This document shows positions 17,917 through 52,356 of a stretch of 64,000 nucleotides of DNA, piece by piece. Numbering within the stretch: position 1 is the stretch's first letter; each line of letters opens with the position of its first letter. The position numbers and the translations under genes are program-made. The notes below the pieces were generated by a model. It was not told the origin of the DNA. It ran no database searches and saw only the letters and a list, made by a program, of their open reading frames with translations. Source of the DNA: Utricularia gibba (Eukaryota > Plantae > Magnoliophyta); contig NEEC01000004.1 of assembly GCA_002189035.1 (NCBI GenBank), positions 1,922,001 to 1,986,000 on the forward strand, given 5' to 3'.

Positions 17917-20900
17917 ATGTGGAAGCTGAAGATAGCGGAAGGGAAAGATTCGCCTTATCTATACAGCACAAACGGGTTCGTGGGAAGACAGATCTGGGAG
18001 TTCGATCCTGAGGCCGGGACGCCGGAGGAACGGGAAGCTTTTGAGGATGCTCGCCGGAAGTTTCAAGAGAATAGGAAGCATGGGTTTCATTCATGCGGTG
18101 ATATGTTCACGAGAATCCAGGTGCTTGATTGGAAGGAGAGGCTACTTGGTGAATTTGGGATCCAGTATTTTGGTTACCAATTGCGTTTCCACGTTTACAG
18201 CTGAAGAAGGAGAGCGGGATTGATCTACTGAGCTTGCCGCCTGCGAGAGTCGGAGAAAACGAGGCCGTCAGCTACGAAACGGCGACGGTGGCCGTGAGGA
18301 AAGCATTGCGTCTTAATCGCGCTATTCAGGCGGTGGACGGTCATTGGCCGGCAGAGAACGCCGGCCCAATGTTCTTCACACCACCCCTGGTACGTGGCAG
18401 CTCGAAGGATACCCTTCTCCTTTCATTTTTTTTTTTAAACAAACTTAATTATCCTGTAATTTCCACTTTTTTTTTTGTTGTACAGATAATCGCACTGTAC
18501 ATAGGTGGAGCCATTAATGCAACTTTAACTTACGAACACAAAAAGGAGATGATCCGTTACATCCTCAATCATCAGGTACTTTTTCGAATGATTTTGTAAA
18601 TTAAAATTTTCAAAACATATTTATTAATCATTTACGTTTTACTCTTTAATGTATTTACCTTTTTTACATTTTTATTAATAACTTATTTTTAGTACTGATC
18701 TATATTAAAAATTTATCTTTATTTTCATCTCTAAATTTTAAATTATAAAATTAAATTTCAAATTATTAATTTAAATAATTTAAATCATAATCTTCAATTA
18801 AAACCTTAAAAATATGATATTATAACTTTAAACTAACCTAAATCAAAATAATAAAATTTATTTATCTTTATTTTAATCTCTAAAATGTCCAAAAACTTAT
18901 TAATATATTATACCCAAAGTATAAATACTGAATTTAAACCTTCAATTGAAACAATAAGGTCTGAAAATAAACTATATTTTTAATAATATTAATATATGAA
19001 AAAATACATCTAATAAATTTATTAAAAATAGAATACATAAAGAATCATAAAGATAAAATAAAATACAAAAAATATCTCTACTTTTATTAATATTACAATT
19101 TTTTTTATAAGATAATATAAATAAAAAAAGTAAATACAAAAAAGTTGAGATATTTACAAAGATAAAAGTATATTATCAATTATATTCTACAATTCAGATA
19201 AAACAATAACAAATTTGAAAACAAGAGTAAAATGAAAATGTTTTTAAAAAACTAGAGAATTTAACCTATTATCTTGTACTCTTTCTAGATTAGATTCTAA
19301 TTAATTCTCTATTTAACCTAATTGTGGTTTCAAATTATGTAACACATTTGTGATTATGACATGATAGAACGCGGATGGCGGATGGGGATTTTACATAGAG
19401 GGGCATAGCACCATGATCGGATCAGCCCTCAGTTATGTCTCGCTGAGGTTACTAGGGTTGGGCCCGGACGATGCGGACGGTGCCGTCGCCAAGGGCCGAA
19501 AATGGATCCTCGACCACGGTGGAGCAACCGGCATTCCTTCCTGGGGAAAAGCATACCTTTCGGTAATTTCATTCCGTTTGTAGGTATTTGTTTGTACGTT
19601 TCATGGGTTGCTAAAACTATATTTGACCAGGTACTTGGAGTGTACGGCTGGGATGGGTGCAACCCTCTTCCACCAGAGTTCTGGTTGTTCCCTTCAGTTC
19701 TTCCTTATCATCCGGGTATGATTCTTCTACAGGGAAACCTACAAGGAAGCTTTGTTTGCCTGATCCCATTCTAATCAGTAGTTTGAATACAAAAATGCAG
19801 CAAAAATGTGGTGCTATTGTCGTACAACATACATGCCAATGTCGTATTTGTATGGAAGGAAGTTCCATGGTCCTCTGACGGACCTGGTCATGTCCCTCAG
19901 ACAAGAGATCCATGTGAGGCCGTACCATCAGATCGATTGGAACAAGGCTCGCCATGATTGCTGCAAGGAGGACGTGTACTTCCCCCACACCTTCGTACAG
20001 GACTTGCTTTGGGATGTTCTTAACTATTGCTCTGAGCCCTTCATGAGGCGATGGCCGCTGAATAGGATACGGCAGAAGGCTCTTGACAAGACGATCAAGC
20101 ACATGCGTTACGGCGCAGAGGAAAGCCGATACATGACCATTGGATGTGTGGAAAAGGTACGTGCGTACATGTTGTTTTCAAGATTACAGCAATATGGTTT
20201 CTCTGTGAGGCAGAGCACATGTGAGTTTGTCGCAAATTTTTATGTGTTGCAGTCTCTACAAATGATGTGTTGGTTTGCCCTTGATCCAAACTGCGAGGAG
20301 TGGAAGTACCACATTGCAAGAGTTCCTGATTATCTGTGGCTAGCAGAGGATGGCATGAAGATGCATGTTTGTTAACTGACTTTACATCTGCATCAACTTC
20401 CATTCCCTTATCAGTTCTTTGATTGGAAATTTACTTGTTTGAATGAAGAGCTTTGGAAGTCAACTATGGGACTGCGTACTTGCAACTCAGGCAATACTCG
20501 CTAGTGGGATGACAGAGGAGTATGGTGACTCTCTAAAGAAAGCGCATTTCTACATCAAAGAATCCCAAGTATGATGATCCATCTATGAACTTCAATTGCT
20601 TTCTCATTTCACTTAGCTTTTGTGAAGGTGGTTTGATTCTTGGTTGAAATGCAGATAAAAGAAAATCCGAAGGGAGATTTTGAAAACATGCACCGGCATT
20701 TCACAAAGGGAGGTTGGACGTTTTCCGATCAGGATCAGGGATGGGTTGTATCTGACTGCACAGCTGAATCACTCAAGGTAGGACTAAACTTCACAAACCC
20801 ACAATCTCTTCCGAATTTAGAAACGCAATAGGGAGAGTCCTCTTTCCCTATGACACTCAATGAGTTGCGCTCTATCTGCTATTCCAGTGTCTGCTTCTGC

Positions 20901-22295
20901 TATCCCAAATGCCAGAGGAAATTGCAGGGGAAAAGGCAAAAGTGGAGGGTCTCTATGAAGCTGTAAACGTACTGCTCTACTTGCAAGTAAGCATGGCTGA
21001 TATACACATCAGGATTTCTTTAATACCTATGGGTTTGCAACTAATCGAAAATTCCGACGATCATCCAGAGTCCTCTGAGTGGCGGATTTGCGCTATGGGA
21101 GCCTGCAATTCCACAGCCTTACTTGCAGGTAAACAATTATCACGTCAAGATATTAGCACACATACTCTTCATCCAATATGCTCATCTCAGAACATTTCGC
21201 AGGTGTTGAATCCATCCGAACTCTTTGCTGACATAGTTGTTGAGCAAGAGTAAGATTTCAACTGCGTTCTTTGGTGGTTCAACAAGAAAGATAAATAACA
21301 CATGTATGTGTATGCAGGCATGTAGAATGCACTGCATCCGTCATGCAAGCACTGGTATACTTCAAGCGCCAGTATCCCGGACACCGTGAGAAGGAGATTG
21401 AGCTCTCCATTGCAAAAGCAGTACACTATCTACAAGAAAAGCAATGGCCTGATGGCTCATGGTGAGCTGTCAGCATACTGTGATCTACTCCACCGATGCA
21501 TACAGCAACAACTCAAATCTGGTTGCGTTGCAGGTACGGCTACTGGGGAATCTGCTTCATCTACGGCACATTCTTCGTGCTTGCAGGACTGGCTTCGGTC
21601 GGAAAGACGTACGAGAACAGCGATGCCGTCCGAAAAGCCGCCAACTTCTTCTTGTCCATACAAAACGAAGAAGGTGGATGGGGAGAATCCCTCGAGTCCT
21701 GTCCCTCTACGGTACTCACTATACATACTTGTTCATTTCAATAGGATGAATGGCGGCCAGATTGCGTTCTTATAAGCTTTCCATTGTTGCAGAAATACAC
21801 TCCTCTAGAAGGAAATCGGACCAACTTGGTTCAAACATCCTGGGCCATGCTCGGACTCATGCTTAGCGGGCAGGTTCGTTATACCGCACTTAAAATAACA
21901 GTGAAATCTTTTAACATATTGTAATCATTCTTTTGTTCTACGAAATGATCCACTCATTTCCACCAATACATTGTCGCATTTCTTACAAACGGAATCTGTG
22001 CTTCCCTTTTAGATGGAAAGAGACCCAAAGCCACTGCATAGAGCAGCCAAGTTGCTGATCAATGCGCAAATGGGGGATGGCGATTTGCCTCAGCAGGTGA
22101 AGCTTAAAACACATCTTTCCAGAAACAAGAAACCTAGTTTATGTGTTGCTTTATACATCATATGACATGCTCTCGCAGGAAATCACGGGAGTGTTCCAGA
22201 AGAACTGCATGCTCCATTACCCTCTACACCGGAACATTTTCCCATTGTGGGCGTTGGGGAAATACAGGAAGCGAGCATGGCCAGGCCAGATCTAG
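17917..22295 (+). CDS. OSC: Oxidosqualene cyclase copy 1 (dammarenediol/mixed-amyrin-synthase-like), intact, 761 aa
   Basis: Exons 17917-18120, 18201-18389, 18486-18575, 19368-19562, 19631-19715, 19801-20156, 20253-20366, 20449-20568, 20655-20777, 20888-20986, 21069-21128, 21203-21249, 21318-21461, 21534-21711, 21793-21873, 22013-22096, 22179-22295. Total 2286 nt, all GT-AG, open frame. Motifs MWCYCR, SDCTAE (D485), VECT (C565) and QW repeats. Confidence 0.95.
18586..19275. mobile_element. AT-rich non-autonomous Mutator-like insertion in OSC-1 intron 3
   Basis: Intron 3 is 792 bp versus 92-93 bp in OSC-2/3. Insert flanked by near-direct repeats GTACTTTTTC (18576-18585) and GTACTCTTTC (19276-19285), with degenerate inverted ends. 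Confidence 0.55.
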
Positions 22296-22534
22296 AACCC
22301 CTCACACGAAAATGTTGATAATGGTCATAAGTGTTTTTATATATTTTTTATACGACAAACATCGAAATCATATAATCTGTTACCTGAACAAACAACGTTG
22401 TTGATTGGAGTCATCAATAGGACTAGACCTGGGCAGGGGTGTCGACTTGGCGGGTAACGAGTTGTACACGTTAAGTCATGACCATATTACAGTTTCACGA
22501 GTCCATGGATATACGGATTCTGACCCCTAACTTG

Positions 22535-22792
22535 GGTGTAAAATGAACTCCCCAAAGGCATGAGAGCTGAGATCAGCAGCAAAGTGCGCAGATGTAAAAT
22601 GGATTCGTATCATCCACAGCAGAGACACGTAAAAGGTGGCTGCTGGTAAGATATTTTTAGAGTTAAAGCTGGCCGTCAACAAATATCCATCGGCATATCC
22701 CACTCTTATGTTTCTAAGGATCATGGAAAAAAAAAAGCAAGGCACTATATTATGTTTGTGAGGGATTGGCTGTTAAATCATTTGTTTTAAGT
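22535..22792 (+). repeat. Non-coding block duplicated at 52715-52972
   Basis: Only 2 differences across 22550-22764 versus 52730-52944. Confidence 0.9.
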
Positions 22793-23368
22793 CAGTGTGT
22801 GGTAGAATCATTTACATCTTTAAATGGGTATATATGTAAACTCAATCGTAAAACAAATATAAGTATATAGGATTAGAGTAGAACATAAAGAATTTTGTGC
22901 TTGCCATATGAAAACTAATGCATTCAATATTTGGCACGGGTGAAGATTAAGTCTAAACTAAAACTAATTTAGTTACGCGATAAAATACAATAAAATAATA
23001 AACAAAAAATTTGGTACTATCTGAACAAGATAATGCAATACTTTGAAGTTCTAAAAGTAACATGATTATTTTTATGCTTATACCATCCATCACACGAAAA
23101 TTTGGTACTCTTTAAGATTACTCCTAAAGAGTTCCATATATCACATTTAACTAACAAATTAAGAGTTCAAATCTATTTAAAATATCATGATTATTACAAT
23201 ACAGCCTACTTATCATTGATACATGTGCTTTATGCTTCCAACCTATTGGGTACGTACCTGATACACGAGATGCGTGGATACGCTTGGATACTTTAATATT
23301 ATTAAAAAAATTAAAAAATATATTAAATAGTTTTTATTATTTCAAGAAGTACCTCTAAGGACAACTCC

Positions 23369-23972
23369 TGATGTGACCCTCTAATCTATAGAGATTAGCA
23401 ACCCACGAACAAGAAGTGATTTTGAAACTTAGAAAGTAACTCACCCAAGTCTATGCTCAAGAGAATGAATCTCTTGCAACCAGACTTCGAAACAAAGAAA
23501 AGTAAGAGCCACACTTCAAAAAGAGAAGGGATTGGAAGTGATAATCCTAGGACACCACAAGCTCAAAGCTTGATAAGTCAAGAGTGTTCAAGCACTCAAA
23601 GAAGATGAGTATCCTTACAACATACATTAAAATGAACTAAAGGTCCTAAAAGAGTACAACTCTAGAGTATTTATACTTTAGGATTGAGCTCTAACATTAC
23701 TTGATCCAAACTAAATGAAATAGAAAAGTCTAACAAGCCCAATGCTCTAAGATAAATCCACCTTCATGTAGTTGAGCTCTTTTGATGGGATGTCTTCAAG
23801 CCCATGCTTGATTCCAATAGTATTAAGGAGGGCCTTAAGTGTATCTTCAAGCATCTTGGTTTTGTTCCTAGTCATTAATCCTGATGGAATGATCTTTGTC
23901 TCTAATATGTTCACTTGGACAAACTCCTTATCATTCTTTAAATACACTTCATTATCTTCTTGGGGCTCATCA
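23369..23972 (-). mobile_element. Solo LTR (604 bp, CRM/chromovirus-like termini)
   Basis: TGATG...CATCA termini, perfect TSD ACTCC (23364-23368, 23973-23977) and a minus-strand TATAAATAC. Confidence 0.85.
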
Positions 23973-24229
23973 ACTCCTATACAATTCTTGCAAGAGCTAG
24001 AGAAGTAGCTACGAGTAAAGCACTTGATGATACGGCTTTACAAGTAGCATTGCCCTTCTTCACTCATGCGATATTGTTGGATCAGGCTTTTGCCCATTGG
24101 AATAGACTTCTAATTTTTCAATTAGTTACCTATTTTATCTAAAGTAAGGAATGCTTAGATTTGCTTCTTGATCATATCTATTGTTTTTTTTTTCAAAAAT
24201 CATGAATCAAGAAAATAGAGATTCAGATT

Positions 24230-27949: not shown

Positions 27950-28535
27950 ATATGGATACTCACATGAAGTATGAAAGAGACTTCGAATTAGACTACGAGA
28001 GTGAGGACGAAGACTGTGAAATTCTCGATGACCAATTCCCCATCGAGAATGATGATTATGGACTATCTTTGCAAGTTCCCGTATCTAAAGGAGTACAATT
28101 GGAAGGTCCTCGCAATGAAACAAGTGAAGGGCCTTTGAACATTGTTAGAACGGAAAGCGGTAGTATTCGAATACAAGAACTTTTATAAGTATAATTTGTT
28201 TTGATTATATTGTATTATTATCATTATTATTATTTAAATTATGTTTTATTTATAGGGAAGGGATAATCTTTGAATTGAAAGCCGAGGCGAAAGATGCACT
28301 TGAAGAATATTGTGTGCGGAAAGGAATCCAATTCTGGTTTGAGAAGAATGATAAGTATCGTTTAATTGCTCGTTGTAGAGGTAGTGAAGGGGTAACATGC
28401 CCATGGAAGGTGTATATGAAGGTAACATTGATGATAACTTGGAGTGTTTATGAAGTTACTCCACATAGAGACCATTGTCGGCCACATGTGAACAACAAAT
28501 CAGTAAATGCGCGTTGGCTTGACAATGTCATGTGA
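27950..28535 (+). pseudogene. MuDR transposase N-terminal fragment
   Basis: Acidic N-terminal segment, then KAEAKDALEEYCVRKGIQFWFEKNDKYRLIARC...CPWKVY...H.C...NKSVNARWL (MuDR DNA-binding domain pattern). Ends abruptly. Confidence 0.75.
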
Positions 28536-29175: not shown

Positions 29176-30240
29176 TATATTCGATCCTTGGTTATAATTC
29201 AGATCATATTTACTATTTTTTTATTTAAATATTTTTATTAACATTTGATTCTTAAGTATAATTCAGATTAAGCATATATTTTCAATTTTAATATTTTAAT
29301 TAGTATTCGATCCTTAGGTATGATTCTGATCAAACGAATATTTTTTATTTTAATATTTTTATTAGCAGTCGATCCTTAAGTATACTATGGATCAAGTGTA
29401 TATTCATTTATTTTAAATCTTAATTAGCATTCGACCTTTAGAAGCAATTTAGATCGTGTATACATGACAAGGACACACGGGCGTGGGTTGTGTATAAACC
29501 ACGCCCGTGTACATTCCCAGCAGCACCACAAGGCCACACGGGCGTGGTTTACGCCCGTACACACACGCAGCAGCATGACAACACCACACAGGCGAGGTTT
29601 ATGCGTAAACCATGCCTGTGTGCACATGCAATAGCCACAAGGCCATACGAGTGTGGTTTATATGTGGTTTACATATAAACCATGCATGTATGCACACGCA
29701 GCAGCACACAAGGCCACACGGGCGTGGTTTACGCCCGTACACACACGCAGCAGCATGACAATGCCACATAGGCATGGTTTATGCACAACCCATGCCCGTG
29801 TTCCCTTGTCATGTATACACGATCTAAATTGCTCCTTAGGGTCGAACGCTAATTAAGACTTAAAATAAATGAATACGCACTCGATCCAAAGTATACCTAA
29901 GGATCAAATGCTAATAAAAATATTAAAATAAAAAATATACGTTCGATTCGAATCATATCTAAGGATCGAATTCTAATAAAAATATTACAATAATAAATAC
30001 ATGCTCGATCTCGAATCATACATAAGGATCGAATGCTAATAACAATATTAAAATAAAAAATATACGCTCGATCTGAATCATATCTAAGGATCAAATGCTA
30101 ATAAAAATATTAAAATAAAAAATATACACTCGATTCGAATCATAATTAAGGATCGAATGCTAATTAAAATGATTAAAGTAAAAATACACACTCCATCGAA
30201 AGTATAACTAAGGATCGAATGCTAATAAAATTAAAAACTA
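29176..30240. repeat. Foldback: inverted arms built from 62-bp tandem units around a GC-rich core
   Basis: Right-arm AAGGATC at 29899, 29961, 30024, 30086, 30148 and 30210. Left-arm GAT(C/T)CTT at 29183, 29247, 29309 and 29371. The core has a 53-bp direct repeat (29528-29580, 29708-29760). Confidence 0.85.
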
Positions 30241-32015
30241 AGAAACTTTCATATTTATTATATGATTTAATAAATGACATATTTACATTATTTATATTTT
30301 AATAAACATATATAATATGATTATAAAAATATATTTTTTGTAATTGTTGGATTTGACATGTTCTCGCATGCTTAGAAATAAATATAATTTATAAAAATGC
30401 TAATAATAATCTGAAGTTTACTTTGCAACGACATCACGGGTTCGAATCGTAGTGGATTGACCCAATGGATATTCGGATTGATTGTTGTGCCCATGTCTAC
30501 AAGGCATTTATCGATCAACATTTATTTTAAAAAGTATTTAATTTTTTTAAAATTTTGATAATTTTATATGTTAATTATGCCAATTCGATAAACTTATTGG
30601 GTTAATTATGTTAATTTGTCACACTTTATGGGTTAAATATGTAGATTTAAAGAACTTTAAGGGTCAACAATATCAATTTATTAAACTATAAGGGTCAAAT
30701 ATGTCAAAATATTGGGTTAAATATACTAAATGAACACTATACATGGGACCAATAGTAAACTTATTGGGTTAAACGGACTCCATTGTAAAGTTATATAACT
30801 CTTCGTTGGATCAAATATGCCCTATTATAATACTGTATTGGTCAAATATGTCATGCAACAAATTTTTTAAAAGTTAAATATGTTATTTTATAAATATTTT
30901 GGGTCACATATGCGGAATTGGTACTGGTTCAAATCAAATATGTTAAATCGGTCATTTTGTTATGAGTAAAAAATGTCAAATTTTCAAAATTTTAGGTCAC
31001 AAATGACATCACCCCACCCTAGTATGGTACTTATAAATTTGTCGTATCCTAAAGATAAATTATTAATATAACAAGATAAATGATTTAATATTAATAATTC
31101 CAAGATAATATGCCACACTTTTATGACTCCGTGCGATGATTTCAACACAAGGTTGGTGTGTTGTTCCTTACAAAAGAGTCAAAGCATTTTTTTTTTTTTA
31201 GTTCATTCTTGAGTGCAATTTGTACCAATCCAGTTAGGTAAAAAAAAATCAAAGTTTGGTGTATAAATTTAATGTTGGGACGAGGGGTGTTCTAATTTGA
31301 TCATGATTCGATATTCATTTCTTTTAATTTCTTTCTTCGCTTATCCATCACATCCGTTGATGAATGTCAGGATAAGAGGCCTCTTGCCGGGCCCATTCTG
31401 CTGTGCATTTATCACAGTTTTCTTTCGGTATATCAACACTTCACCCAAAAACATGAAGTAAAAAGAGATAAATGCAGGAATGATGGATTAAGAATAACCC
31501 TAGGATGATGGAAACCGTCAGATACTTTCAAAAAAACAAAAAAGGTTTCAGGGTGGCCGATTCAACAATTTCTCGTCCAAAATGGTGGGCGGCGGCGGGT
31601 GAGCATCAACCCGAGTAGCGTTGAGAGTTGGGAGCCATGGAAGTCTGCTAAATGCTATTTATGACATAATATGTCTTCTCCATTATGAAACATATATTGT
31701 TATAATATTGTGTCACTGATGATATTGCGTCCCATTTTCTCCTCTTTTAATCGTGTGTCTGCATAATAAAACATCAGCGCTAGAGTGGGTAATCAGTGCT
31801 TACAAGGTGTGTCTGCGTGCTAGCAGAAATTTCGTTTCTGGGTAGCTTGACTGGACTTTTCTGTATCATCATTAGATGACTTGTGTACGACAACAGACGC
31901 CCGTCACCTTACGGTGCTTCCTTTTCATTACATAAACCACTCACTTATCACAAGTCTCTCCACTACCAAGCCACACATAACACACCCACGCACACCCAGA
32001 GAGAGAGAGGAAGCC

Positions 32016-35000
32016 ATGTGGAAGCTGAAGATAGCGGAAGGGAAAGATTCGCCTTATCTATACAGCACAAACGGGTTCGTGGGAAGACAGATCTGGGAGT
32101 TCGATCCTGAGGCCGGGACGCCGGAGGAACGGGAAGCTTTTGAGGATGCTCGCCGGAAGTTTCAAGAGAATAGGAAGCATGGGTTTCATTCATGCGGTGA
32201 TATGTTCACGAGAATCCAGGTGCTTGATTGGAAGGAGAGGCTACTTGGTGAATTTGGGATCCAGTATTTTGGTTACCAATTGCGTTTCCACGTTTGCAGC
32301 TGAAGAAGGAGAGCGGGATTGATCTACTGAGCTTGCCGCCTGCGAGAGTCGGAGAAAACGAGGCCGTCAGCTACGAAACGGCGACGGTGGCCGTGAGGAA
32401 AGCATTGCGTCTTAATCGCGCTATTCAGGCGGTGGACGGTCATTGGCCGGCAGAGAACGCCGGCCCAATGTTCTTCACACCACCCCTGGTACGTGGCAGC
32501 TCGAAGGATACCCTTCTCCTTTCATTTTTTTTTTTTAAACAAACTTAATTATCCTGTAATTTCCACTTTTTTTTTTGTTGTACAGATAATCGCACTGTAC
32601 ATAGGTGGAGCCATTAATGCAACTTTAACTTACGAACACAAAAAGGAGATGATCCGTTACATCCTCAATCATCAGGTATTTTTTCTAAATTAAGTTCTGA
32701 TTAATTCTTTAATTAACCTAATTATCTTTCCAAATCATGTAACACATTTGTGATTGTGATATGACAGAACGGGGATGGAGGATGGGGATTTTACATAGAG
32801 GGGCATAGCACCATGATCGGATCAGCCCTCAGTTATGTCGCACTAAGGTTACTAGGATTGGGGCCGGATGATGCGGACGGTGCCGTCGCCAAGGGCCGGA
32901 AATGGATCCTCAACCACGGTGGAGCCACCGGGATTCCTTCCTGGGGAAAAACATACCTTTCGGTAATTTCATTCCGCTTGTAGGTATTTGTTTGTACGTT
33001 TCATGGGTTGCTAAAACTATATTTGACCAGGTACTTGGAGTGTACGACTGGGATGGGTGCAACCCTCTTCCACCAGAGTTCTGGCTGTTCCCTTCAGTTC
33101 TTCCTTATCATCCGGGTATGATTCTTCTACAGGGAAAACTACAACGAAGCTTTGTTTGCCTGATCCCATTCTAATCAGTAGTTTGAATACAAAAATGCAG
33201 CAAAAATGTGGTGCTATTGTCGTACAACATACATGCCAATGTCGTATTTGTATGGAAGGAAGTTCCATGGTCCTCTGACGGACCTGGTCATGTCCCTCAG
33301 ACAAGAGATCCATGTGAGGCCGTACCATCAGATCGATTGGAACAAGGCTCGCCATGATTGCTGCAAGGAGGACGTGTACTTCTCCCACACCTTCGTACAG
33401 GACTTGCTTTGGGATGTTCTTAACTATTGCTCTGAGCCATTCATGAGGCGATGGCCGCTGAATAAGATTCGGCAGAAGGCTCTTGACAAGACAATCAAGC
33501 ACATGCGGTATGGCGCAGAGGAAAGCCGATACATGACCATTGGATGTGTGGAAAAGGTACGTATGTACATGTTGTTTTCAAGATTACAGCAATATGGTTT
33601 CTCTGTGAGGCAGACCACATGAGAGTTTGTTGCAAATTTTGTGTTGCAGTCTCTACAGATGATGTGTTGGTTTGCTCATGATCCAAACTGCGAGGAGTGG
33701 AAGTACCACATTGCAAGAGTTCCTGATTATCTGTGGCTAGCAGAAGATGGCATGACGATGCATGTTAGTTTCACTGATTTTACATCTGCATCAACATCCA
33801 TTCCATTTTCAGTTCTTTGATGGGAAATTTACTTGTTTGAATGAAGAGCTTTGGAAGTCAAGTATGGGACTGCGCACTTGCAACTCAAGCAATAATCGCT
33901 AGTGGGATGACAGAGGAGTATGGTGACTCTCTAAAGAAAGCGCATTTCCACATAAAAGAATCCCAAGTATGAACTTCAATTTGCTTTTTCATTTCACTGT
34001 AGCGTTTGTGAAGGGTGGTTTGATCCTTGGTTGTAATGCAGATAAAAGAAAATCCGAAGGGAGATTTTGAAAGCATGTACCGGCATTTCACAAAGGGAGC
34101 TTGGGCGTTTTCCGATCAGGATCAGGGATGGGTTGTATCTGACTGCACAGCTGAATCACTCAAGGTACTAAACTTCACAAACCCACCATCTCTTCCGAAT
34201 TTAGAAACGCAATAGGGAGAGTCCTCTTTCCCTATGACACTCAATGAGTTGCGCTCTATCTGCTATTTCAGTGTCTGCTTCTGCTATCCCAAATGCCAGA
34301 GGAAATTGCAGGGGAAAAGGCAAAAGTGGAGCGTCTCTATGAAGCTGTAAACGTACTGCTCTACTTGCAAGTAAGCATGGCTGATATACACATCAGGATT
34401 TCTTTAATACCGATGGGTTTGCAACTAATCGAAAACTCCGACGATCATCCAGAGTCCTCTAAGTGGCGGATTTTCGGTATGGGAGCCTCCAATTCCACAG
34501 CCTTACTTGGAGGTAAGCAATCATCACGCCAAGATATCAGAGCCCACGTACTCTGCATTCAATATGCTCATCTCAATGTTTTGATCATTCCTCAGGTGTT
34601 GAATCCATCCGAACTCTTTGCTGACATAGTTGTTGAGCACGAGTAAGATTTCAACTGCGTTCTTTAGTTGTTGAATAAGAAAGATAAATAACACATGTAT
34701 GTGTATGCAGGCATGTAGAACCCACTGCATCCATCATCCAAGCACTGGTATACTTCAAGCGCCAGCATCCCGGACACCGTGAGAAGGAGATTGAGCTCTC
34801 CATTGCAAAAGCAGTACACTTTCTAGAGGAAAAGCAATGGCCTGATGGCTCATGGTGAGCTGTCAGCATACTGTGATCTACTCCACCGATGCATACAGCA
34901 ACAACTCAAATCTGGTTGCGTTGCAGGTACGGCTACTGGGGAATCTGCTTCATCTACGGCACACTCTTCGTGCTTGCAGGACTGGCTTCGGTGGGAAAGA

Positions 35001-35689
35001 CGTACGAGAACAGCGATGCCGTCCGAAAAGCCGCCAACTTCTTCTTGTCCATACAAAACGAAGAAGGTGGATGGGGAGAATCCCTCGAGTCCTGTCCCTC
35101 TATGGTACCCACTATACATACTTATTCATTACAATGGGATGATTGGCGGCCAGATTGCGTTCTTACAAGCTTTCCATTGTTGCAGAAATACACTCCTCTA
35201 GAAGGAAATCGGACCAACTTGGTCCAAACATCCTGGGCCATGCTCGGACTTATGCTTACCGGACAGGTTCGTTATACGGCACCTAAAATAAAAGTGAAAT
35301 CTTCTAAGTTTGAATGATCCACTCATTTCCACCAATCTCATCTTTAATGCATATACGATATATGGTCGCATTTCTTACAAACGGGATCTGTGCTTCCCTT
35401 TTAGATGGAAAGAGACCCAAAGCCACTGCACAGAGCAGCCAAGTTGCTGATCAATGCGCAAATGGAGGATGGCGATTTCCCTCAGCGGGTGAAGCTTAAA
35501 ACACACATCTTTCCAGAAACAAAAAACCAAGTTTATGCAATGCTTTATACATCATATGACATGCTTTCGCAGGAAATCACGGGAGTGTACATGAAGAACT
35601 GCATGCTCCATTACGCTCTACACCGGACCATTTTCCCATTATGGGCGTTGGGGGAATACAGGAAGCGAGCATGGCCAGGCCAGATCTAG
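32016..35689 (+). CDS. OSC: Oxidosqualene cyclase copy 2, open frame, 761 aa, with Cys565Pro
   Basis: Exons 32016-32219, 32300-32488, 32586-32675, 32768-32962, 33031-33115, 33201-33556, 33650-33763, 33847-33966, 34042-34164, 34272-34370, 34453-34512, 34596-34642, 34711-34854, 34927-35104, 35186-35266, 35405-35488, 35573-35689. All GT-AG. MWCYCR and SDCTAE intact. Confidence 0.95.
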
Positions 35690-41700: not shown

Positions 41701-42250
41701 CAACTTACATTTCTAAGCGAGTGGAGTCATGGAACAACAAAAATGGTGTCAACCGCCATCTATCCTCAGATTGCAATGGTTGAATTTGATTCTCTTATAT
41801 TCTGATCTAGTGTCAAGATGTAACAGGGAATTGATGGCATCCCTAGAATCAACGTTTAGTATTTGTTATGCCTTCACACGTGAAGTTACAAGTATAATAC
41901 AAGAGCTAAAATACATAATCAACAAAATTGAGCATGTACCTGCTGTGCATGGGAGCATGTATACCAAAATTTTGCCACTTCCTACACTTTTGTGTACCTT
42001 GACTAATCATCACTATTACCTTCTTTTGTTTTCTGTTTTTTCTACAAGTTGTAACCGAAACCTTCATTTGAGCATGATCAACTACTTTTATTGATGCATG
42101 AGGAATTGGTTTATCCCAATATGAATATAGTTTATGAGGTTGATCTGTAAAATAATTTGTCATTGACATTGATGTAGTGTCTTTTGTAGTCTATCAAAAA
42201 AGTAGTGCTCACATTGCGCAAATATAGTTTGCTCATAAAAAGAAAATCAT

Positions 42251-44002
42251 TGATAACTATATTTATGATTATGCACCTAGAGTCAATGATACTTGTGCCA
42301 ATGAGCATAAGAGTAGATGTCTCGTGCTCTTTAATATAAGTCTAGTGTCGTTGTAGCATAATATAATAATACATATTTTTTAGTATTTTAGGACTACAAA
42401 ATAAGTAATATTATTGTTAGGGGTTAAAATCTGCGTGCCGGACTAAGCCGATTTTCGTGTTGCGGGTGGTATTGTGTCATTTTTGCTGTCTGTTTGGTTT
42501 AATTGGATAAAATAGAAGTAGGCGGGGATTTTTTACGTGGAAACCACCGTGAGGCGGAAAAACCACACAGCTATTGGAGCTCGACGAAAAAAATTTTTAC
42601 TAAACGGAGATGGTGGAGAAAGATACATACTGGGAGGCTAGGGATCGAAAAAATTCCCTTCTCCCATCATGATTCCTTTTATTTATAGGGGAGGCCAGTC
42701 TAGCCGATTCCTCGCCTCTGCTGGTGTCAGTTACTTTTATGCCTGCTATGTGACCCTATTTTTCAAACATCGGCCGTCTATTCCACCGTAATTCGGCTGC
42801 TTTTCAGATTGTGTCAGACGGCTATCACTGTCAAATTTCTGACACATATCGGCATGCTGACTGATGTTATTCTGTCAAGGCTCATTTTGACAGCCTTTCA
42901 AAATCCGATCATCCTCGGCCGATTTATACCCCATCAATTATATTATAAAATTGAGATTTAATTCAACATTTATGCACTTTTGTGTTTAGTAGTATATTTA
43001 TGTATTTTTATTCCTAGATTTAGCTCCAATCTATGTTTTAATCATTTTCTTTTGATAATACATCACGTTTTTCAGCATTCCAAATCCCAAAGAGCCAAAA
43101 GTACACAATAAAAATGGCATCAAATAAGGACAAAATGGATGAAAGAGAACAAAAAGAGAAGTGGAGAGAGAAATATATCTCTCCAATGGAGAACACGTAA
43201 TACAATTTTAGGGGAGAGATTTGGGAAATACTTACAAGAAGAGTGGAGGAGACAAACTAAGAACCAAGCTCATCTTTAAAGATTTTTTTAGTTTATCAGG
43301 AATACTACTCATAGCTAGGAGTAGATCACAACAATTTAGCATTTTGTGTTGAAATATTTACATTTCATTACTTCTATCTTTCTGTTATTAAGATGTGACA
43401 TCAACATGTTTTTGTTGCTATGTTATGAACGTATTTTATTTTCCTTCAGCATGAGTAGCTAATACATACTTAATGCCTTAAGGTAGAAGGGAATTTATAT
43501 GATTATTGATAATCAGACTACATTAGCTTCATGACTACACTAATTCCTTATTAAACAAGAATAGATATAGGAGGAGGGAATAGTGATATTTATTATAAGT
43601 AAACCTAACTAGAAGTAAACAAAAAGTTAGGAAAAACAAGAGTTTAGGTAGACTTGTGTCTTTATTTGTTACATGATTGGATAGTGGATTGGGTGAGATA
43701 AACTAATTTTGGAAGTTTCAAAGCATTGCATTATCTTATTCTTGTTAGTACTCAAATTTGCATATTATTCATTTACTGTCTTTAATCATAAATTTACATT
43801 AGTTCTAACTTAGACTAAATCTTTTAATTATGATATTCATTGAATGTATTGATTCTCATATAACAAGCACCATCTCCTTATATTCAACCCTAATCAATAT
43901 GTTTGTTATTTATTCTATGATTTAGAGTGTATTAGGTTTATAAATTTTATTTAATACAAAAATTTGCAATTTATAATGACATTGAAAAATTTTCGTTTAT
44001 CA
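42251..44002 (+). mobile_element. Athila-like LTR carrying a nested solo LTR
   Basis: TGATAA...TTTATCA termini and similarity to 44901-46072 and 13750-14841. No TSD (ATCAT vs AGAGG). Confidence 0.6.
42415..42936. mobile_element. Solo LTR (522 bp, same family as 15371-15896)
   Basis: TG...CCCCATCA termini and perfect TSD ATTAT (42410-42414, 42937-42941). Confidence 0.85.
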
Positions 44003-44900
44003 AGAGGGTGACATCAATAGTGATCACAGCGTGACAAAAATGGAATGTCTGAATGCATTATCTAAATGACCAAAATAATTATTTAAGTACCTTTGTTTCA
44101 AATATGTTTGGTTGTCAGTGTTGATATTCCACAATGGTACCTGGATTTGTAAGATGCAAATATTTGATGTTTAGAAAACGGAGATACTATCGAATTAATA
44201 GGGTCTAAGACATCCATGGAGTATTCGTTCTTGTCGTCTAGATATTGATGATAAAAGATAGAGGTATCCATTATCTATCTCCAACATTAGTTCGCCTATT
44301 TGATATTTCAAACATGATCATCTCTTCCTCCTCTTGTGTTTCCTCGTTTATATGTTCATCTTCGTCAAGTGGCTCATTCGCTTGTATATCAAAGTCGATG
44401 TCACAATGTTGCATATAATCAACTGGAATGTCATTGCAACCTATAGGATCATTAGTAGCATAATCATCATACTCATGATTTTCTTCACTTGCACAAATAT
44501 AGATTAAACAATAGTCATGCTAAATTTCAATAACACACACTTTAAAAAGTTCCTTTCTTTTTCTATATTACCATACCTTCATTCATTTCTTTTTCAGCAC
44601 AACAAATATTTAAATCAACGTTAAAGACTTCTACAAAGTTTTGCTTTAGTATGTGTTCCACGAAAATGTCGAAACTCATTTGTGCATGGTTGGATTGAAA
44701 GCATATAACAAATCACAATTTACTGTAATCCTAAAAACTCAAGTAAAGTTAGAAGAATAGTTAAAAAGCTCAATTGTTATTCGTATTTTGCAACTTGCTA
44801 GGCCTATGCCACACACTGAATACAATTCTTCCTGAAGAGAATTTAGTGAAATACAACTCTCAAAACTTCAAATGGATATTGACAGCATATCATAAGTTGT

Positions 44901-46072
44901 TGATAACACATACTTTTGAGTGATTGAGTATAGGAAATGACTCATATTGTGCTACCAAAATTAAGTTTTATTGTCTAGTTTTATATTTTTGTGCATAGTA
45001 CCGTAGTTGTGTTATTTTAGTCTTTATTAGGTCTCAATCGTAACACAAATTTCCATATATGAATAGTATCCAACCTTACTCTTAAATAGTTTTCTTTGAG
45101 AAATACACCACATGTCGTAACACAAATCCCAAGGAGCCGGATATAAATAGTGTATTGGCAGAGGATGAGGTAGAAGTCTGAAAAGGAGTACACACAAAAT
45201 CCAAGGAAGAGAAAAAAGAGGATTTTGAACAAAAGAGGGGATAAGATGGAGAAAGAAAAGTATCTCCCCCATTGAAGACAGACGACATTCTTTCTGGAGA
45301 AGGTTTTTTTTGGGGGGGAGGGGGGAGGGTGAGAAGGAGGAAGATGAACCAGGAACGAAGCTGATGTTTGAAGACTATTTTCTATTTCCAAAGAATATTA
45401 CTTTTAGTTAAGAGTAGCTAGCGACATTTCTAGTTTTCTGTTGACATTTTAAATTCCTTGCTTGTTTACTTTTTGGTCGATTGTGAGATGAGTACAATGT
45501 GAATGATGTTTTCATTTCTATTTTTATTTACCTTAAGCATGAGTGGCTAAGCATTTAGGGGTGCCTTGAGATAAAAAGGGGAGAATTGTGTTATTCAATC
45601 TTAACTATAAATCACACCACTTCCTTAACAAATCAGGATGAATCCAGGAGGAGGTTGTAGTGAAACCCAGCTTAACAACCCTAATTAGAGGTAGACTAAA
45701 GATTAGAGGGAAAATAAGAGCTCGGGTAGACCTAGACTTTGTTGTTAATTGTTTGATTTATGGTTTGTGTGAGCTTGTTTAGTGATAAACATACATCCTC
45801 TAGGAGTCCCAAGGCATCACCCATTTCACCTTAGAAACAACCGAGTTCAAAAGTTTGTTACTTTTCTTTACTGTATTTTATCGCAACTCTGTCTTAATTC
45901 TAATTAAGACCAAATCTATCAACGTGACACTGATTACATTCATTGACTTTCACATAGTAAGCACCTAGCTCCTTGTGTTCGACCCTAGTCCACTATTCTC
46001 ATATTTTTCATATGATTTGATGTGAATTAGGTTTATAAATTTTATTTGATAGGGGAAATTTGCATTTATTCA
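44901..46072 (+). mobile_element. Athila-like solo LTR (1172 bp)
   Basis: TG...CA termini and perfect TSD GTTGT (44896-44900, 46073-46077). Confidence 0.85.
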
Positions 46073-46773
46073 GTTGTGTAATTATTTGGGTATTCAATTA
46101 TGTTACTTCCATAAAAGATTTTGGTGAGGATGCTACTGGTATTCATCTACTTGCTTACGAAAATTGCAGCACTCCCAGACTTACTTATATGTGATATGTT
46201 AGTTTTGAATGAAGTAAGAAGATTTATGAGAATAGAACCTCTATTTATTAGCAAGTTGAAAGTGTGTAGCAAGATAGTGCTTGCAAATCATAAAATCCAG
46301 ATCGGTGGATCTCCATCAAATGTATGGTTTGAATTAGATCGTACATTCTATATTGGATTTCACTTTACCTTTATGTCATATCAAGGGGTAGGCTGGGTTC
46401 AAAGAAACCCAACAAAATTGGAGGTCTCCAGCATGTGAGCGCAAAAAACACACCGTCAATTATTTTAATTGCGCTCCAATGCGATGTAGCTGGGCAATTA
46501 TAGGGTATTAAACAGACCTTTCCCATCAGGTAACTCCAATGTCACTGATTTCTCGTGGTAGTTTTCGATTTTTCAAATTACACTGCAATATCATTTGGTC
46601 TACAGAATTTTCGTCCATGTTAATGTATAATGACTTATTCATTCATAGTGATGATAGGATATGTGCTTCTATCGATGTTGTTGTAATAAAAATGAAATAT
46701 TTTTTGGGCTACATTCAACAAAATATATTATTGTTAGTGTGTATTTTCCTAATATGATGTATTTTCAATTAAA

Positions 46774-47540
46774 ATGATGGATATCTTTCGTGCTAAATAT
46801 GGTATTTCACATGATTATTCTTTTGTAATACCAAATGGTCAATCTACTCTAGGAATAACATCTTTCATTGAGCATGAGATAGGAATTGTAATCGCAATGA
46901 AGACATTAGAAATTGGTATGAAATTTCCTTTGAATCCATTTTTTTATCAACTTACTCATTCACCTTAATCTTCCATTGGGTGCACTTACATCATCAGCAT
47001 TGCTTATGGCATTTACTTTCTTGCAATTACACTGTCATGCCAAGTGGACATTTTCATTGCCATATCCAAGAGCCAAGGACAATAACACAGATCATGTGCT
47101 TGACAAAATATATTATTAGGTGCTACTTATTATTCAAAAGCGACTTCTTATTCGAAGCAATGCCCAAAATATATTAGGTGCTACTTATTATTCTAAGCGG
47201 CATCCAATACATATTGAGCATTGTTTGTTATTCAAAACACCATCCAGAATATATACATTAGTTTTTTAAAAAAAATTCCCAAATTGGAAATTTTATCATG
47301 AACACAAAAATTTAGTTGATTTAATGGATGGAAATATTTTGGGAAAATTCTCAGGTTATTGATCTCTACTTTATCGATTGAAACTATATCACTCATATTT
47401 TGAAAGAGTGATGCAATATGTATTCACTTATAAAACCTTTCCTGACCACACATTTTTATTCGAAGCGGTGTGCAGAATATGATGGGTGCTACTTGTAATT
47501 CTAAGAAGTATTCACAAAATGTTGGGTGCTACATATTATT
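46774..47540 (+). mobile_element. PF04195-like ORF fragment plus ~40-bp repeats
   Basis: IFRAKYGISHDYSFVIP...IGIVIAMKTLEIGMKFPLNPFF, followed by GGTGCTACTTA repeats. Confidence 0.45.
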
Positions 47541-48631
47541 AAACACAATGTCCAAGATATTTATATTTAGTTATTTTAAAAAAATATGTATTTCAAATAA
47601 AATGTTATATATCGATTATATCATTAATAGATATATGATAAAATATTTTAAGATTAAAGATAATAAACTAAAATCATTTAGTATAATAATTTTGAATAAT
47701 ATTTACATATTTTTTGCAAAATGATTCAATATTATAATATATGTATAATTATTATCAAATATTTACATCAAACTTTATTTTATATCTTTTAGATTAAATA
47801 ATATAATATATTAAATTTTATTACAATATTTTTAATAATATACAATTTAAATGCACATAATATGACATTTATTATTGTTTCTGGTAATTTTAAGAAAATA
47901 ATGAATATGCATGTGAATGTATACGTTTTTTTTACATTTATTTTTAAAAGAAATATTAAGTATGAATATTTTGTAAAAATTTATAAAAAAATGAATGCTT
48001 TTCAAATTAAGATGAAGAAATATGGGCATTTTTCAAATTGATCCCGACTCAACTTGGATAACTGGCAGCATCTCTTCCTCTGGCATCTATTTTCCCTTCG
48101 GTATATCAACACTTGACCCAAAAAAATGAAGTAAAAAGAGATAAATGCCGGAATGATGGATTAAGAATATCCCTAGGATGATGGACGGAAACCGGCAGAT
48201 ACTTTCAAAAAAACAAAAAAGGTTTTAGGGTCGAAGGTTCAACAATTTCCACGTCCAAAATGGTGGGTGGCCGGTGCGCATCAACACGTTTAGCGTCGAG
48301 AGTTGGGAGCCATGGAAGTCTGCCAAATGCTTTTTATGACATAATATGTCTTCTCCATTATGAAACATATATTGCTATAATCAAACATCAGCGCTAAAGT
48401 GGGTAACAGTGATTAGAAGGTGTGTCGGCGTGCTAACAGAAACTTCGTTTCTCGGTAGCTTTAGTGGACTTTTCTATTTCATCATTTCAGGACTTGTGCA
48501 ACAACATACGCCCGTCACCTCAAAGTTACAGTGCTTCCTTTTCTTTATATAAACCACTCACTTATCACAAGTCTCTCCACTACGAAGCCACACATACACA
48601 CACCCACGCACACCCAGAGAGAGAGGAAGCC

Positions 48632-51600
48632 ATGTGGAAGCTGAAGATAGCGGAAGGGAAAGATTCGCCTTATCTATACAGCACAAACGGGTTCGTCGGA
48701 AGACAGATCTGGGAGTTCGATCCTGACGGCGGCACGCAGGAGGAACGGGAAGCTTTTGAGGATGCTCGCCGGAAGTTTCAAGAGAATATGAAGCATGGGT
48801 TTCATTCCTGCGGCGATATGTTCACGAGAATCCAGGTGCTTGATTGGAAGGAGAGGCTACTTGGTGAATTTGGGATCCGGTAATTTGGTTACCAATTGCG
48901 TTTCCACGTTTGCAGCTGAAGAAGGAGAGCGGGATTGATCTACTGAGCTTGCCGCCTGCGAGAGTCGGAGAAAACGAGGACGTCAGCTACGAAACGGCGA
49001 CGGTGGCCGTGAGGAAAGCATTGCGTCTTAATCGCGCTATTCAGGCGGTGGACGGTCATTGACCGGCAGAGAACACCGGCCCAATGTTCTTCACACCACC
49101 CCTGGTACGTGGGAGCCTCAACGATAGATATCCTTCTCCTTTCATTTTTTTTTTAAAGAAACCTTATTATTCTTTAATTCCAAAGAAAAAAAATTATATT
49201 TTTTTGTTTTATTGTGATCATGATATTTTCTGGATACAGATAATTGCACTGTACATAGGTGGAGCCATTAATACAACTTTAACCTCCGAACACATAAAGG
49301 AGATGGTCCGTTACATCCTCGATCATCGGGTACTTTTTTCTAATTTAAGTTCTGATTAATTGTCTACTAAACCTAATTAACTTTTCAAATTATGTAACAC
49401 AATTGTTACTATGACATGACAGAACGCGGATGGAGGATGGGGATTTTATATAGAGGGGCATAGCACCATGATCGGATCAGTCCTGAGTTATGTCTCACTA
49501 AGGTTACTAGGGTTGGGCCCGGACGATGCGGACTGTGCCGTCGCCAAGGGCCGGAAATGGATCCTCGACCACGGTGGAGCCACCGGGATTCCTTCTTGGG
49601 GAAAAGCGTACCTTTCGGTAATTTCATTCCGTTTGTAGGTGATTGCTTGTACATTTCATGGGTTGCTAAAAGTTATGTTTGATCAGGTACTTGGAGTTTA
49701 TGACTGGGATGGGTGCAACCCTCTTCCACCAGAGTTCTGGCTGTTCCCTTCAGTTCTTCCTTATCATCCGGGTATGATTCTTCTACAGGGAAGACTACAA
49801 GGAAGCTTTGTTTGCCTGATCCCATTCTAATCAGTATTTTGAATACAAAAATGCAGCAAAAATGTGGTGCTATTGTCGTATAACATACATGCCAATGTCG
49901 TATTTGTATGGAAGGAAGTTCCATGGTCCTTTGACGGACCTGGTCATGTCCCTCAGACAAGAGATCCATGTGAGGCCGTACCATCAGATCGATTGGAACA
50001 AGGCTCGCCATGATTGCTGCAAGGAGGACTTGTACTTCCCCCACACCTTCGTACAGGACTTGCTTTGGGATGTTCTTAACTATTGCTCTGAGCCCTTCAT
50101 GAGGCGATGGCCGCTGAATAAGATCCGGCAGAAGGCTCTTGACAAGACGATCAAGCACATGCGGTATGGCGCAGAGGAAAGCCGATACATGAGCATTGGA
50201 TGTGTGGAAAAGGTACGTATGTACATGTTGTTTTCAAGATTACAGCAATATGGTTTCTCTTTGAGGCAGATCACATGAGAGTTTGTTGCAAATTTTTATG
50301 TGTTGCAGTGTCTAGAGATGATGTGTTGGTTTGCTCATGATCCAAACTGCGAGGAGTGGAAGTACCACATTGCAAGAGTTCCTGATTATCTGTGGCTAGC
50401 AGAGGATGGCATGAAGATGCATGTGTGTTTCACTGATTTTACATCTCCATCAACTTCCATTTCCCTTTCAGTTCTCTCTAATGGGAAATTTACGTGTTTG
50501 AATGAAGAGCTTCGGAAGTCAAATATGGGACTGCGCACTTGCAACTCAAGCAATACTCGCTAGTGGGATGACAGAGGAGTATGGTGACTCTCTAAAGAAA
50601 GCGCATTTCCACATAAAAGAATCCCAAGTATGAACTTCAATTTGCTTTTTCATTTCACTGTAGCGTTTATGAAGGGTGGTTTGATCCTTGGTTGTAATGC
50701 AGATAAAAGAAAATCCGAAGGGAGATTTTGAAAGCATGTACCGGCATTTCACAAAGGGAGCTTGGGCGTTTTCCGATCAGGATCATGGATGGGTTGTATC
50801 TGACTGCACAGCTGAATCACTCAAGGTACTAAACTTTACAACCCTCAATCTCTTCCGAATTTAGAAATGCAATTGGCAGAGTCCTCTTTCCGTATAACAC
50901 TCAGTTAGTTGCGCTCTATCTGCAATTCCAGTGTCTGCTTCTGCTATCCCAAATGCCAGAGGAAATTGCAGGGGAAAAGGCAAAAGTAGAGCGTCTCTTT
51001 GAAGCTGTAAACGTACTGCTCTACTTGCAAGTAAGCATGGCTGATATACACACAAGGATTTCTTTAATACCGATGGGTTTGCAACTAATCGAAAACTCCG
51101 ACGATCATCCAGAGTCCTCTGAGTGGCGGATTTGCGCTATGGGAGCCTGCAATTCCACAGCCTTACTTGCAGGTAAACAATCATCACGCCAAGATATCAG
51201 AGCCCACGTACTCTGCATCCAATATGCTCATCTCAATGTTTTGATCATTCCTCAGGTGTTGAATCCATCCGAGCTCTTTGCTGACGTAGTTGTTGAGCAA
51301 GAGTAAGATTTCAACTACGTTTTTGGTGGTTCAACAAGAAAGATAAATAACCCACTTTTGTGTATGCAGGCATGTAGAACCCACTTCATCCATCATCCAA
51401 GCACTGGTATACTTCAAGCGCCAGCATCCTGGACACCGTGAGAAGGAGATTGCGCTCTCCATTGCAAAAGCAGTACACTTTCTAGAGGAAAAGCAATGGC
51501 CTGATGGCTCATGGTGAGCTGTCAACATACTGTGATCCACTCCACCCATACATACAACAAACAACTCAAAACTGGTTGCGTTGCAGGTACGGCTACTGGG

Positions 51601-52356
51601 GAATCTGCTTCATCTACGGCACACTCTTCGTGCTTGCAGGACTGGCTTCGGTGGGAAAGACGTACGAGAACAGCGATGCCGTCCGAAAAGCCGCCAACTT
51701 CTTCTTGTCCATACAAAACGAAGAAGGTGGATGGGGAGAATCCCTCGAGTCCTGTCCCTCTATGGTACCCATTATACATACTTATTCATTACAATGGGAT
51801 GATTGGCGGCCAGATTGCGTTCTTACAAGCTTTCCATTGTTGCAGAAATACACTCCTCTAGAAGGAAATCGGACCAACTTGGTCCAAACATCCTGGGCCA
51901 TGCTCGGACTTATGCTTACCGGGCAGGTTCGTTATACGGCACCTAAAATAAATGTGAAATCTTTTAACTTTGAATGATCCGATCCACTCATTTCCAGCAA
52001 TCTCATCTTTAATGCATATACGATATATTGTCCCATTTCTTACAAACGGAATCTGTGCTTCCCTTTTAGATGGAAAGAGACCCAAAGCCACTGCACAGAG
52101 CAGCCAAGTTGCTGATCAATGCGCAAATGGAGGATGGCGATTTCCCTCAGCGGGTGAAGCTTAAAACACACATCTTTTCAGAAACAAAAAAACCAAATTT
52201 ATGCGTTTCTTTTTACATCATATGATATGCTTTCGCAGGAAATCACGGGAGTGTACATGAAGAACTGCATGCTCCATTTCGCTCTACACCGGAGCATTTT
52301 CCCATTGTGGGCGTTGGAGGGAATACAGGAGGCGAGCATGGCCAGCCCAGATCTAG
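48632..52356 (+). pseudogene. OSC: Oxidosqualene cyclase copy 3, pseudogene (W117*, +1 frameshift in exon 17)
   Basis: Exons 48632-48835, 48916-49104, 49240-49329, 49423-49617, 49687-49771, 49857-50212, 50309-50422, 50508-50627, 50703-50825, 50932-51030, 51113-51172, 51256-51302, 51370-51513, 51587-51764, 51846-51926, 52070-52153, 52239-52356. TGG>TGA at 49060-49062. Extra A at 52318 shifts the stop to 52377-52379. Confidence 0.92.

Follow-up and report, generated by a model that had tools for sequence, protein, structure and literature searches.

Two intact copies and one probable pseudogene in a tandem array of oxidosqualene cyclase genes of Utricularia gibba

Results

Three tandem gene copies

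We analyzed a 64,000-nt stretch of Utricularia gibba DNA (GenBank assembly GCA_002189035.1, contig NEEC01000004.1, positions 1,922,001 to 1,986,000 of the forward strand), referred to here as the window, whose first letter is position 1 in all coordinates below. The window contains a tandem array of three oxidosqualene cyclase (OSC) genes, which we designate OSC-1, OSC-2, and OSC-3. Self-comparison revealed three direct copies of a unit of ~4.4-4.7 kb, each with 17 exons on the + strand, and every intron was of the GT-AG type in all three copies. The start codons lie at 17917, 32016, and 48632, giving spacings of 14,099 and 16,616 bases. These values agree with an earlier, model-made reading of the bare nucleotide sequence (hereafter the original prediction), which had described three 17-exon OSC genes at ~14.1- and ~16.6-kb spacing. 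Exons of OSC-1 were read by eye and their ends anchored by script, while those of OSC-2 and OSC-3 were projected from a MAFFT alignment. The resulting gene models are as follows.

17917..22295, + strand: OSC-1, intact, 761 aa; all introns GT-AG, open frame, matches to Pfam and to solved structures
OSC-1 exons, + strand: 17917-18120, 18201-18389, 18486-18575, 19368-19562, 19631-19715, 19801-20156, 20253-20366, 20449-20568, 20655-20777, 20888-20986, 21069-21128, 21203-21249, 21318-21461, 21534-21711, 21793-21873, 22013-22096, 22179-22295
32016..35689, + strand: OSC-2, intact, 761 aa; exons projected from OSC-1, all splice sites GT-AG, open frame
OSC-2 exons, + strand: 32016-32219, 32300-32488, 32586-32675, 32768-32962, 33031-33115, 33201-33556, 33650-33763, 33847-33966, 34042-34164, 34272-34370, 34453-34512, 34596-34642, 34711-34854, 34927-35104, 35186-35266, 35405-35488, 35573-35689
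48632..52356, + strand: OSC-3, same 17-exon layout but broken, a probable pseudogene; splice sites kept, in-frame TGA, one extra base in exon 17

At the protein level, OSC-1 was 94.8% identical to OSC-2, with 40 residues differing, and 92.7% identical to OSC-3, and OSC-2 and OSC-3 shared 94.5% identity, close to the ~93-95% that had been judged by eye. Coding-sequence identity among the three copies was 95.9-97.0%. Synonymous divergence (dS) of 0.06-0.13 between copies bears out the proposal that the duplications were recent. The unit shared between copies comprises the gene together with a few hundred bases upstream and ~100-700 bases downstream. The intergenic spacers (9.5 and 12.9 kb) are unrelated to each other, AT-rich, and filled with repeat debris. 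Unit lengths differ because the following insertion sits in one of the copies.

18580..19290, + strand: AT-rich insertion of ~700 bases confined to intron 3 of OSC-1 and missing from the other two copies (alignment gaps)

The insertion, which may represent a small non-autonomous transposon, carries inverted ends of 21 nt (18626-18646 and 19223-19243). An antisense open reading frame (ORF) of 161 aa runs across exons 5-6 on the - strand and is open in all copies (19617-20102, 33017-33502, and 49673-50158). Its presence is probably incidental to the coding sequence on the opposite, sense strand.

Lesions in OSC-3

Comparison of the copies revealed two lesions in the coding sequence of OSC-3.

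49060..49062, + strand: premature stop codon in OSC-3 (TGG>TGA, W117*), exon 2, in the conserved DGHWPAE motif (sequence comparison)
52313..52326, + strand: extra base in exon 17 of OSC-3, near 52318 (GTTGGAGGGAATAC versus GTTGGGGGAATAC in OSC-2)

Exon 17 of OSC-3 consequently has 118 bases instead of 117, and the frame of the last ~13 codons is shifted. Skipping of exon 2 would keep the frame at the cost of 63 residues. Both OSC-1 and OSC-2 retain an intact frame and splice sites; OSC-3 does not, owing to W117* and the frameshift. At positions conserved among relatives, OSC-3 carries 15 derived changes versus 6-7 in OSC-1 and OSC-2. A higher non-synonymous share in the pseudogene was also considered and rejected, as the ratio of private non-synonymous to synonymous changes in OSC-3 did not differ from that in the others (Fisher p = 0.85). 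On account of the stop codon and the exon 17 frameshift, the array most probably consists of two intact genes and one pseudogene, and not of three working genes as first proposed.

Identity of the enzymes and mapping of residues

Exons were searched one at a time against Pfam and solved structures. The SQHop_cyclase_N (PF13249; 2.7e-10 for exon 4) and SQHop_cyclase_C families (PF13243; 2.2e-15 for exon 14 and 4.2e-4 for exon 17) were both matched. All three copies have the DCTAE motif at 485-489, with D485 aligned to human D455, the MWCYCR motif at 257-262, and four Q..G.W motifs. F413, F474, V483, and D485, the positions at which the original prediction had matched residue numbering to the Euphorbia beta-amyrin synthase, are all present. 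Relative to human lanosterol synthase (1W6K), D485, F474, V483, W418, C565, F729, and Y737 correspond to D455, F444, V453, W387, C533, F696, and Y704, respectively. Residue C565 is equivalent to C564 of the Euphorbia tirucalli beta-amyrin synthase EtAS and to C567 of TwOSC, and Y737 to EtAS Y736. The triad V728-F729-Q730 of OSC-1 corresponds to V727-F728-M729 of EtAS, and its last two residues (729-730) to F731-K732 of TwOSC and F696-N697 of the human enzyme. As to the pair of cysteines that hydrogen-bond to the catalytic Asp (human C456 and C533), C486 is found in all copies, while C565 occurs in OSC-1 only and is replaced by Pro in OSC-2 and OSC-3.

For most exons tested, the best match among solved structures was 8J5Z (e.g., 1.4e-51 for exon 6 and 5e-27 for exon 14), which is the friedelin synthase TwOSC of Tripterygium wilfordii (PMC13737970). 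With exon 13 the human structure 1W6K scored marginally above 8J5Z, and the 20-aa query from exon 11 matched neither; position assignments in exon 11 rest on fragment alignment. Per-exon identity between TwOSC and the window OSCs was roughly 60-70%, and the two have ICFIY in common in the W613 region. The exon-wise comparison with TwOSC, which has F731-K732 and C567, gave no pointer to friedelin as the product. Likeness to the beta-amyrin synthases EtAS and Panax PNY extends to MWCYCR, DCTAE with D485 and C486, F413, F474, V483, W535, W613, and a length of ~760 aa, and the catalytic chemistry of these canonical enzymes is predicted to be the same as that of the window OSCs. The window OSCs differ from canonical beta-amyrin synthases in that their triad is not Val-Phe-Met (VFM), and in having L422 for the usual Phe, Y612 for Asn, F or L622 for Trp, and L or V534 for Ala.

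Placement among plant OSCs

Relatives were collected as 117 fragment proteins from two word searches, one with exon 6, intron 6, and exon 7 of OSC-1 and the other with exon 16, intron 16, and exon 17 of OSC-2. Because the search returns proteins of 0.55-1.75 times the query length, the sequences recovered are fragments. A maximum-likelihood tree built on residues 230-411 recovered the three window copies as monophyletic (99/97) and placed them beside a fragment of Salvia divinorum and another fragment with 84% identity. Fragments of Asteraceae and Camellia belong to the same 15-row clade (100/97), from which Rosa and Capsicum fragments annotated as beta-amyrin synthase are separate. The Salvia fragment, the nearest one, is called beta-amyrin synthase as well, these names being automatic annotations, and within the branch such annotation assigns either beta-amyrin synthase or dammarenediol synthase.

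Motifs that are absent from canonical beta-amyrin synthases are common to all three window copies and recur in Handroanthus, Helianthus, Artemisia, Smallanthus, and Camellia fragments; OSC-1 departs from them at the triad only. None of the copies has the VFM triad of canonical beta-amyrin synthases. Instead, OSC-2 and OSC-3 have the Val-Tyr-Met (VYM) triad of the asterid branch, and OSC-1 has Val-Phe-Gln (VFQ). Judging from these fragments, the window OSCs belong to a widespread asterid branch (Salvia, Handroanthus, Asteraceae, and Camellia) apart from the canonical beta-amyrin synthases. Since this branch is spread across asterids, the genes are not lineage-specific, contrary to the system proposed in the original prediction.

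Replacements in the active site

The replacements listed in that prediction as falling at or near pocket positions were all found, in the order OSC-1/OSC-2/OSC-3: 417 L/V/I, 421 V/A/A, 471-473 GWT/AWA/AWA, 533-534 AL/SV/AL, 565 C/P/P, 729-730 FQ/YM/YM, and 737 Y/Y/F. Their significance is uneven. Experimental data exist for 565, 729-730, and 737, but positions 417, 421, 471, and 533 vary freely among related OSC fragments of other plants and thus carry little weight. The codons that matter most are located as follows.

22191..22199, + strand: triad V728-F729-Q730 of OSC-1 (GTG TTC CAG), from the sequence
35585-35593 (OSC-2) and 52251-52259 (OSC-3), + strand: triad V-Y-M (GTG TAC ATG), from the sequence
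34721..34723 (OSC-2) and 51380-51382 (OSC-3), + strand: codon 565 as CCC (Pro), where OSC-1 has TGC (Cys)

The triad is Val-Phe-Met in 33 of 38 characterized beta-amyrin synthases and is one determinant of yield (PMC9811366). TcOSC1, a multifunctional enzyme of Taraxacum coreanum, naturally has VYM, replacement of which by VFM increased beta-amyrin output by ~35% and lowered the amount of by-products (PMC9811366). Similarly, the mixed amyrin synthase IaAS1 of Ilex asprella, in which alpha-amyrin is dominant, has Tyr728-Met729, whereas its beta-amyrin-dominant paralogue IaAS2 has Phe727 (PMC6678101). IaAS1 and TcOSC1 thus share the VYM triad with OSC-2 and OSC-3; they differ from OSC-1 in its VFQ, and OSC-2 lacks Cys565. 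A shared clade with these two enzymes is suggested by the triad and by the taxa of the fragments rather than by full-length alignment.

The Cys equivalent to C565 (human C533, EtAS C564) hydrogen-bonds the catalytic Asp (PMC10086137, PMC9081704). In the dammarenediol synthase GpDS, the C564A substitution significantly reduced activity but did not abolish it (PMC11369773), and the inactive mutants of EtAS that have been reported are those at D485 (PMC10086137). EtAS Y736, equivalent to Y737, which is Phe only in the broken OSC-3, supports the local architecture according to work cited in a passage of PMC6678101.

Fragment comparisons give a direction to several of these changes. VYM was found in the best-scoring C-terminal fragments (Camellia, Handroanthus, and Helianthus) as well as in those of Artemisia and Smallanthus, and VFM in fragments of the beta-amyrin type. 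Gln at 730 occurred in 0 of ~60 C-terminal fragments, none of which matched the VFQ of OSC-1. By this comparison, Y729/M730 of OSC-2 and OSC-3 are the ancestral state of the branch and F729/Q730 of OSC-1 are derived. We therefore rejected Y729/M730 as a novelty, it being the normal state of the branch; Q479, also considered as unusual, was rejected because it is common within the branch. In the fragment alignments, T473A, C565P, F622L, Q723R, and N742T/S are derived in the OSC-2/OSC-3 type, and OSC-1 has acquired E716G, F720L, E751K, V569, M570, and Q600. Derived states in exon 11 are L534, A538, and Q545, which OSC-1 and OSC-3 have in common.

Several replacements involve more than one base. 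At codon 565, TGC>CCC changes two adjacent bases (21328-21329), and at codons 729-730 the difference between TTCCAG and TACATG amounts to three changes within four bases (22195-22198). Such clustering at 565 and 729-730 points to selection or to mutation events that affected several nucleotides at once.

Mosaic structure of the copies

The distribution of informative sites among the copies is far from uniform, and one tract stands out.

17783..18574 (partner 31882-32674), + strand: 5′ tract from the proximal promoter to exon 3, essentially identical in OSC-1 and OSC-2 (informative sites)

Within this tract, 42 of the 43 informative sites join OSC-1 with OSC-2, as against 45% across the whole gene, and codons 1-162 show zero differences between the two. 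Downstream, runs of sites that unite OSC-2 with OSC-3 alternate with runs uniting OSC-1 with OSC-2 and, in exon 11, OSC-1 with OSC-3. In that exon, six derived base changes between 21077 and 21133 are common to OSC-1 and OSC-3 (L534, A538, and Q545 among others), while OSC-2 retains the state of the Ipomoea, Escallonia, and Camellia fragments, a pattern suggestive of a short tract of conversion between the outer copies, OSC-1 and OSC-3. We interpret the 5′ tract as a product of gene conversion or crossover, and the alternating runs as the mark of gene conversion that has recurred among the tandem paralogues, such that no single tree would describe the three copies. In the catalytic region two types can be distinguished: type 1 is represented by OSC-1, and type 2 by OSC-2 and OSC-3, which have A471, A473, P565, L622, R723, Y729, and M730 in common. 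The mosaic structure, the lesions of OSC-3, and the changes F622L, Q723R, F720L, and E751K had all escaped the original prediction.

Selection

Estimates of the ratio of non-synonymous to synonymous divergence (dN/dS) by the Nei-Gojobori method were 0.40-0.42 for all OSC pairs. Between OSC-1 and OSC-2, codons 163-411 showed 9 non-synonymous and 18 synonymous changes (dN/dS 0.12), whereas codons 412-761, which include most catalytic residues, showed 33 and 10, respectively (dN/dS 0.92). The contrast between these segments was significant (Fisher p = 0.0004), and in the second of them replacement changes accrue at nearly the silent rate. As dN/dS never exceeds 1, relaxed constraint fits as well as adaptive change does. 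The uneven distribution is consistent either with relaxed constraint after duplication or with a mixture of constrained and positively selected sites, and does not by itself show adaptation.

Surroundings of the array

Twenty ORFs of at least 90 aa outside the OSC genes were scanned against Pfam; one belonged to family GH17, one was a transposase relic, and 18 had no family. The remaining ORFs of at least 90 aa look by eye like those of copia retrotransposons. Apart from OSC and transposon sequences, a single gene was found in the window.

55164-56216, - strand: GH17 beta-1,3-glucanase, intact exon of 350 aa (Pfam 4.6e-83)

No further OSC pieces were detected in the window by tblastn. Tailoring genes (cytochrome P450 [P450], UDP-glycosyltransferase, or acyltransferase) were absent from the 20 ORFs scanned, in which GH17 and the transposase were the only Pfam families, and from the rest of the 64-kb window as judged by eye, in accord with the earlier statement that no tailoring enzyme lies inside it. 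Status as a triterpene gene cluster is therefore not supported within the window. The array resembles the avenacin cluster of oat and the thalianol and marneral clusters of Arabidopsis in that an OSC family has expanded locally by tandem duplication, but differs from them in that the 64-kb window includes no gene for a P450, a glycosyltransferase, or an acyltransferase.

The flanks and spacers contain several repeats. A copia-like long terminal repeat retrotransposon relic occupies 3327-6900 (- strand), bounded by 195-nt direct repeats with 95% identity (3327-3521 and 6703-6900), and ORFs between the repeats resemble integrase and reverse transcriptase by eye. An ORF at 13253-13744 (- strand) gave a partial match, below the Pfam cut-off, to Transposase_32 (putative plant transposon protein); a repeat family related to this ORF occurs also at 13960-14841, 43168-44002, and 45341-46067. 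Between OSC-1 and OSC-2 lies a repeat block (29178-30245; period 62-125 nt) whose units are in both direct and inverted orientation.

Discussion

The reading that we favor, and hold to be reasonably well founded, is that the array arose by recent triplication, in tandem, of an OSC unit of the VYM-type asterid branch, that the copies were partly homogenized by gene conversion, and that one of them was lost while the survivors have been drifting or diverging in their catalytic half. This would be a case of redundancy and relaxed constraint, perhaps with early sub- or neofunctionalization. In each intact enzyme, D485 of the DCTAE motif would protonate the epoxide of 2,3-oxidosqualene, and W258, Y260, F413, F474, W535, and W613, together with residue 729, would steer the ensuing cation cascade. 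Both OSC-1 and OSC-2 probably make pentacyclic triterpene alcohols, presumably of the amyrin/taraxasterol kind. OSC-1 keeps the full catalytic set, the Asp-activating C565 included, and its derived F729-Q730 probably shifts product ratio or yield. OSC-2 keeps Y729-M730 and is probably a weaker or altered enzyme because the activating Cys is lost to Pro; it also carries T473A beside F474, and F622L. Divergence in product between the two is plausible.

Several considerations weigh against this interpretation. The identical tract of ~0.8 kb in OSC-1 and OSC-2 could be an assembly artefact, positive selection at some positions could underlie the dN/dS of 0.92 in the catalytic half, and the multi-base changes at the triad and codon 565 are unusual and could have been selected. 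Furthermore, the outgroups are protein fragments with automatically annotated names rather than full-length characterized enzymes, and placement rests on residues 230-411 and the C-terminal 60.

Adaptive neofunctionalization, in which selection on the active site has led OSC-1 and OSC-2 to make different defence triterpene skeletons, is in line with the original prediction and in our view unlikely, albeit the strongest of the alternatives. The intact copies differ at 3 of 14 experimentally studied residues (565, 729, and 730) where 0.7 would be expected, an enrichment that is weak (hypergeometric p ~0.03, or ~0.08 for the C-terminal half only, with a list compiled post hoc). The concentration of non-synonymous change in the catalytic half compared with codons 163-411, the clustered multi-base changes at the triad and codon 565, and the altered product spectrum of TcOSC1 upon triad changes (PMC9811366) all point in the same direction. 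On the other hand, dN/dS is not above 1, several of the sites originally listed are naturally variable, and the active site of the OSC-2 type is found in the broken OSC-3 as well. Replacement of C565 by Pro removes a residue that supports catalysis and looks more like decay than design. Positions conserved among the fragments have changed too (F720L and E751K in OSC-1, Q723R and N742T in OSC-2), none of them among the 14 studied, and tailoring genes were not found in the window.

It is improbable that the array is collapsing to a single working gene, with OSC-1 alone functional, OSC-2 unbroken but dead or nearly so, and OSC-3 broken. OSC-2 has C565P, T473A, F622L, and Q723R in common with the pseudogene, and Pro is a harsher replacement than the Ala that cut activity significantly in another OSC (C564A; PMC11369773). 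Yet, even at a dS of ~0.06-0.12, the 761-codon frame of OSC-2 is still open and its 32 splice sites are all in place, its codons 163-411 are under strong constraint (dN/dS 0.12), and its promoter-proximal region and exons 1-3 were recently homogenized with those of OSC-1.

Least probable of all, and given little credence here, is the idea that the lesions of OSC-3 are assembly or sequencing errors and that none of the three genes is broken. The lesion in exon 17 is indeed a single-base indel, but the stop is a base substitution (G>A) with no indel and the inserted base extends no homopolymer run, which makes such an error less likely, and OSC-3 has more derived changes at conserved sites, including Y737F, than either of the other copies.

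Taken as a whole, the array is a modest candidate whose intact genes are ordinary, fast-drifting members of a known enzyme branch, and not an organized, lineage-specific triterpene system. OSC genes duplicated in tandem usually supply the material from which new triterpene skeletons evolve. There is a slim prospect that OSC-2 works despite having Pro in place of the Asp-activating Cys, that the unprecedented VFQ of OSC-1 redirects the cation cascade, or both. If so, the triterpene skeletons made by the two intact neighbors would differ and might be unusual, and OSC-2 would represent a natural alternative way to tune the DCTAE acid. Otherwise, the locus would be an ordinary case of duplication, gene conversion, and loss of one copy. 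Three positions of experimental importance, namely the Asp-activating Cys and the two variable triad residues, distinguish OSC-1 from OSC-2. As a natural pair, these genes would offer a cheap test of how the triad and this Cys affect product ratio and yield in the VYM-type branch of plant OSCs, which has been little studied.

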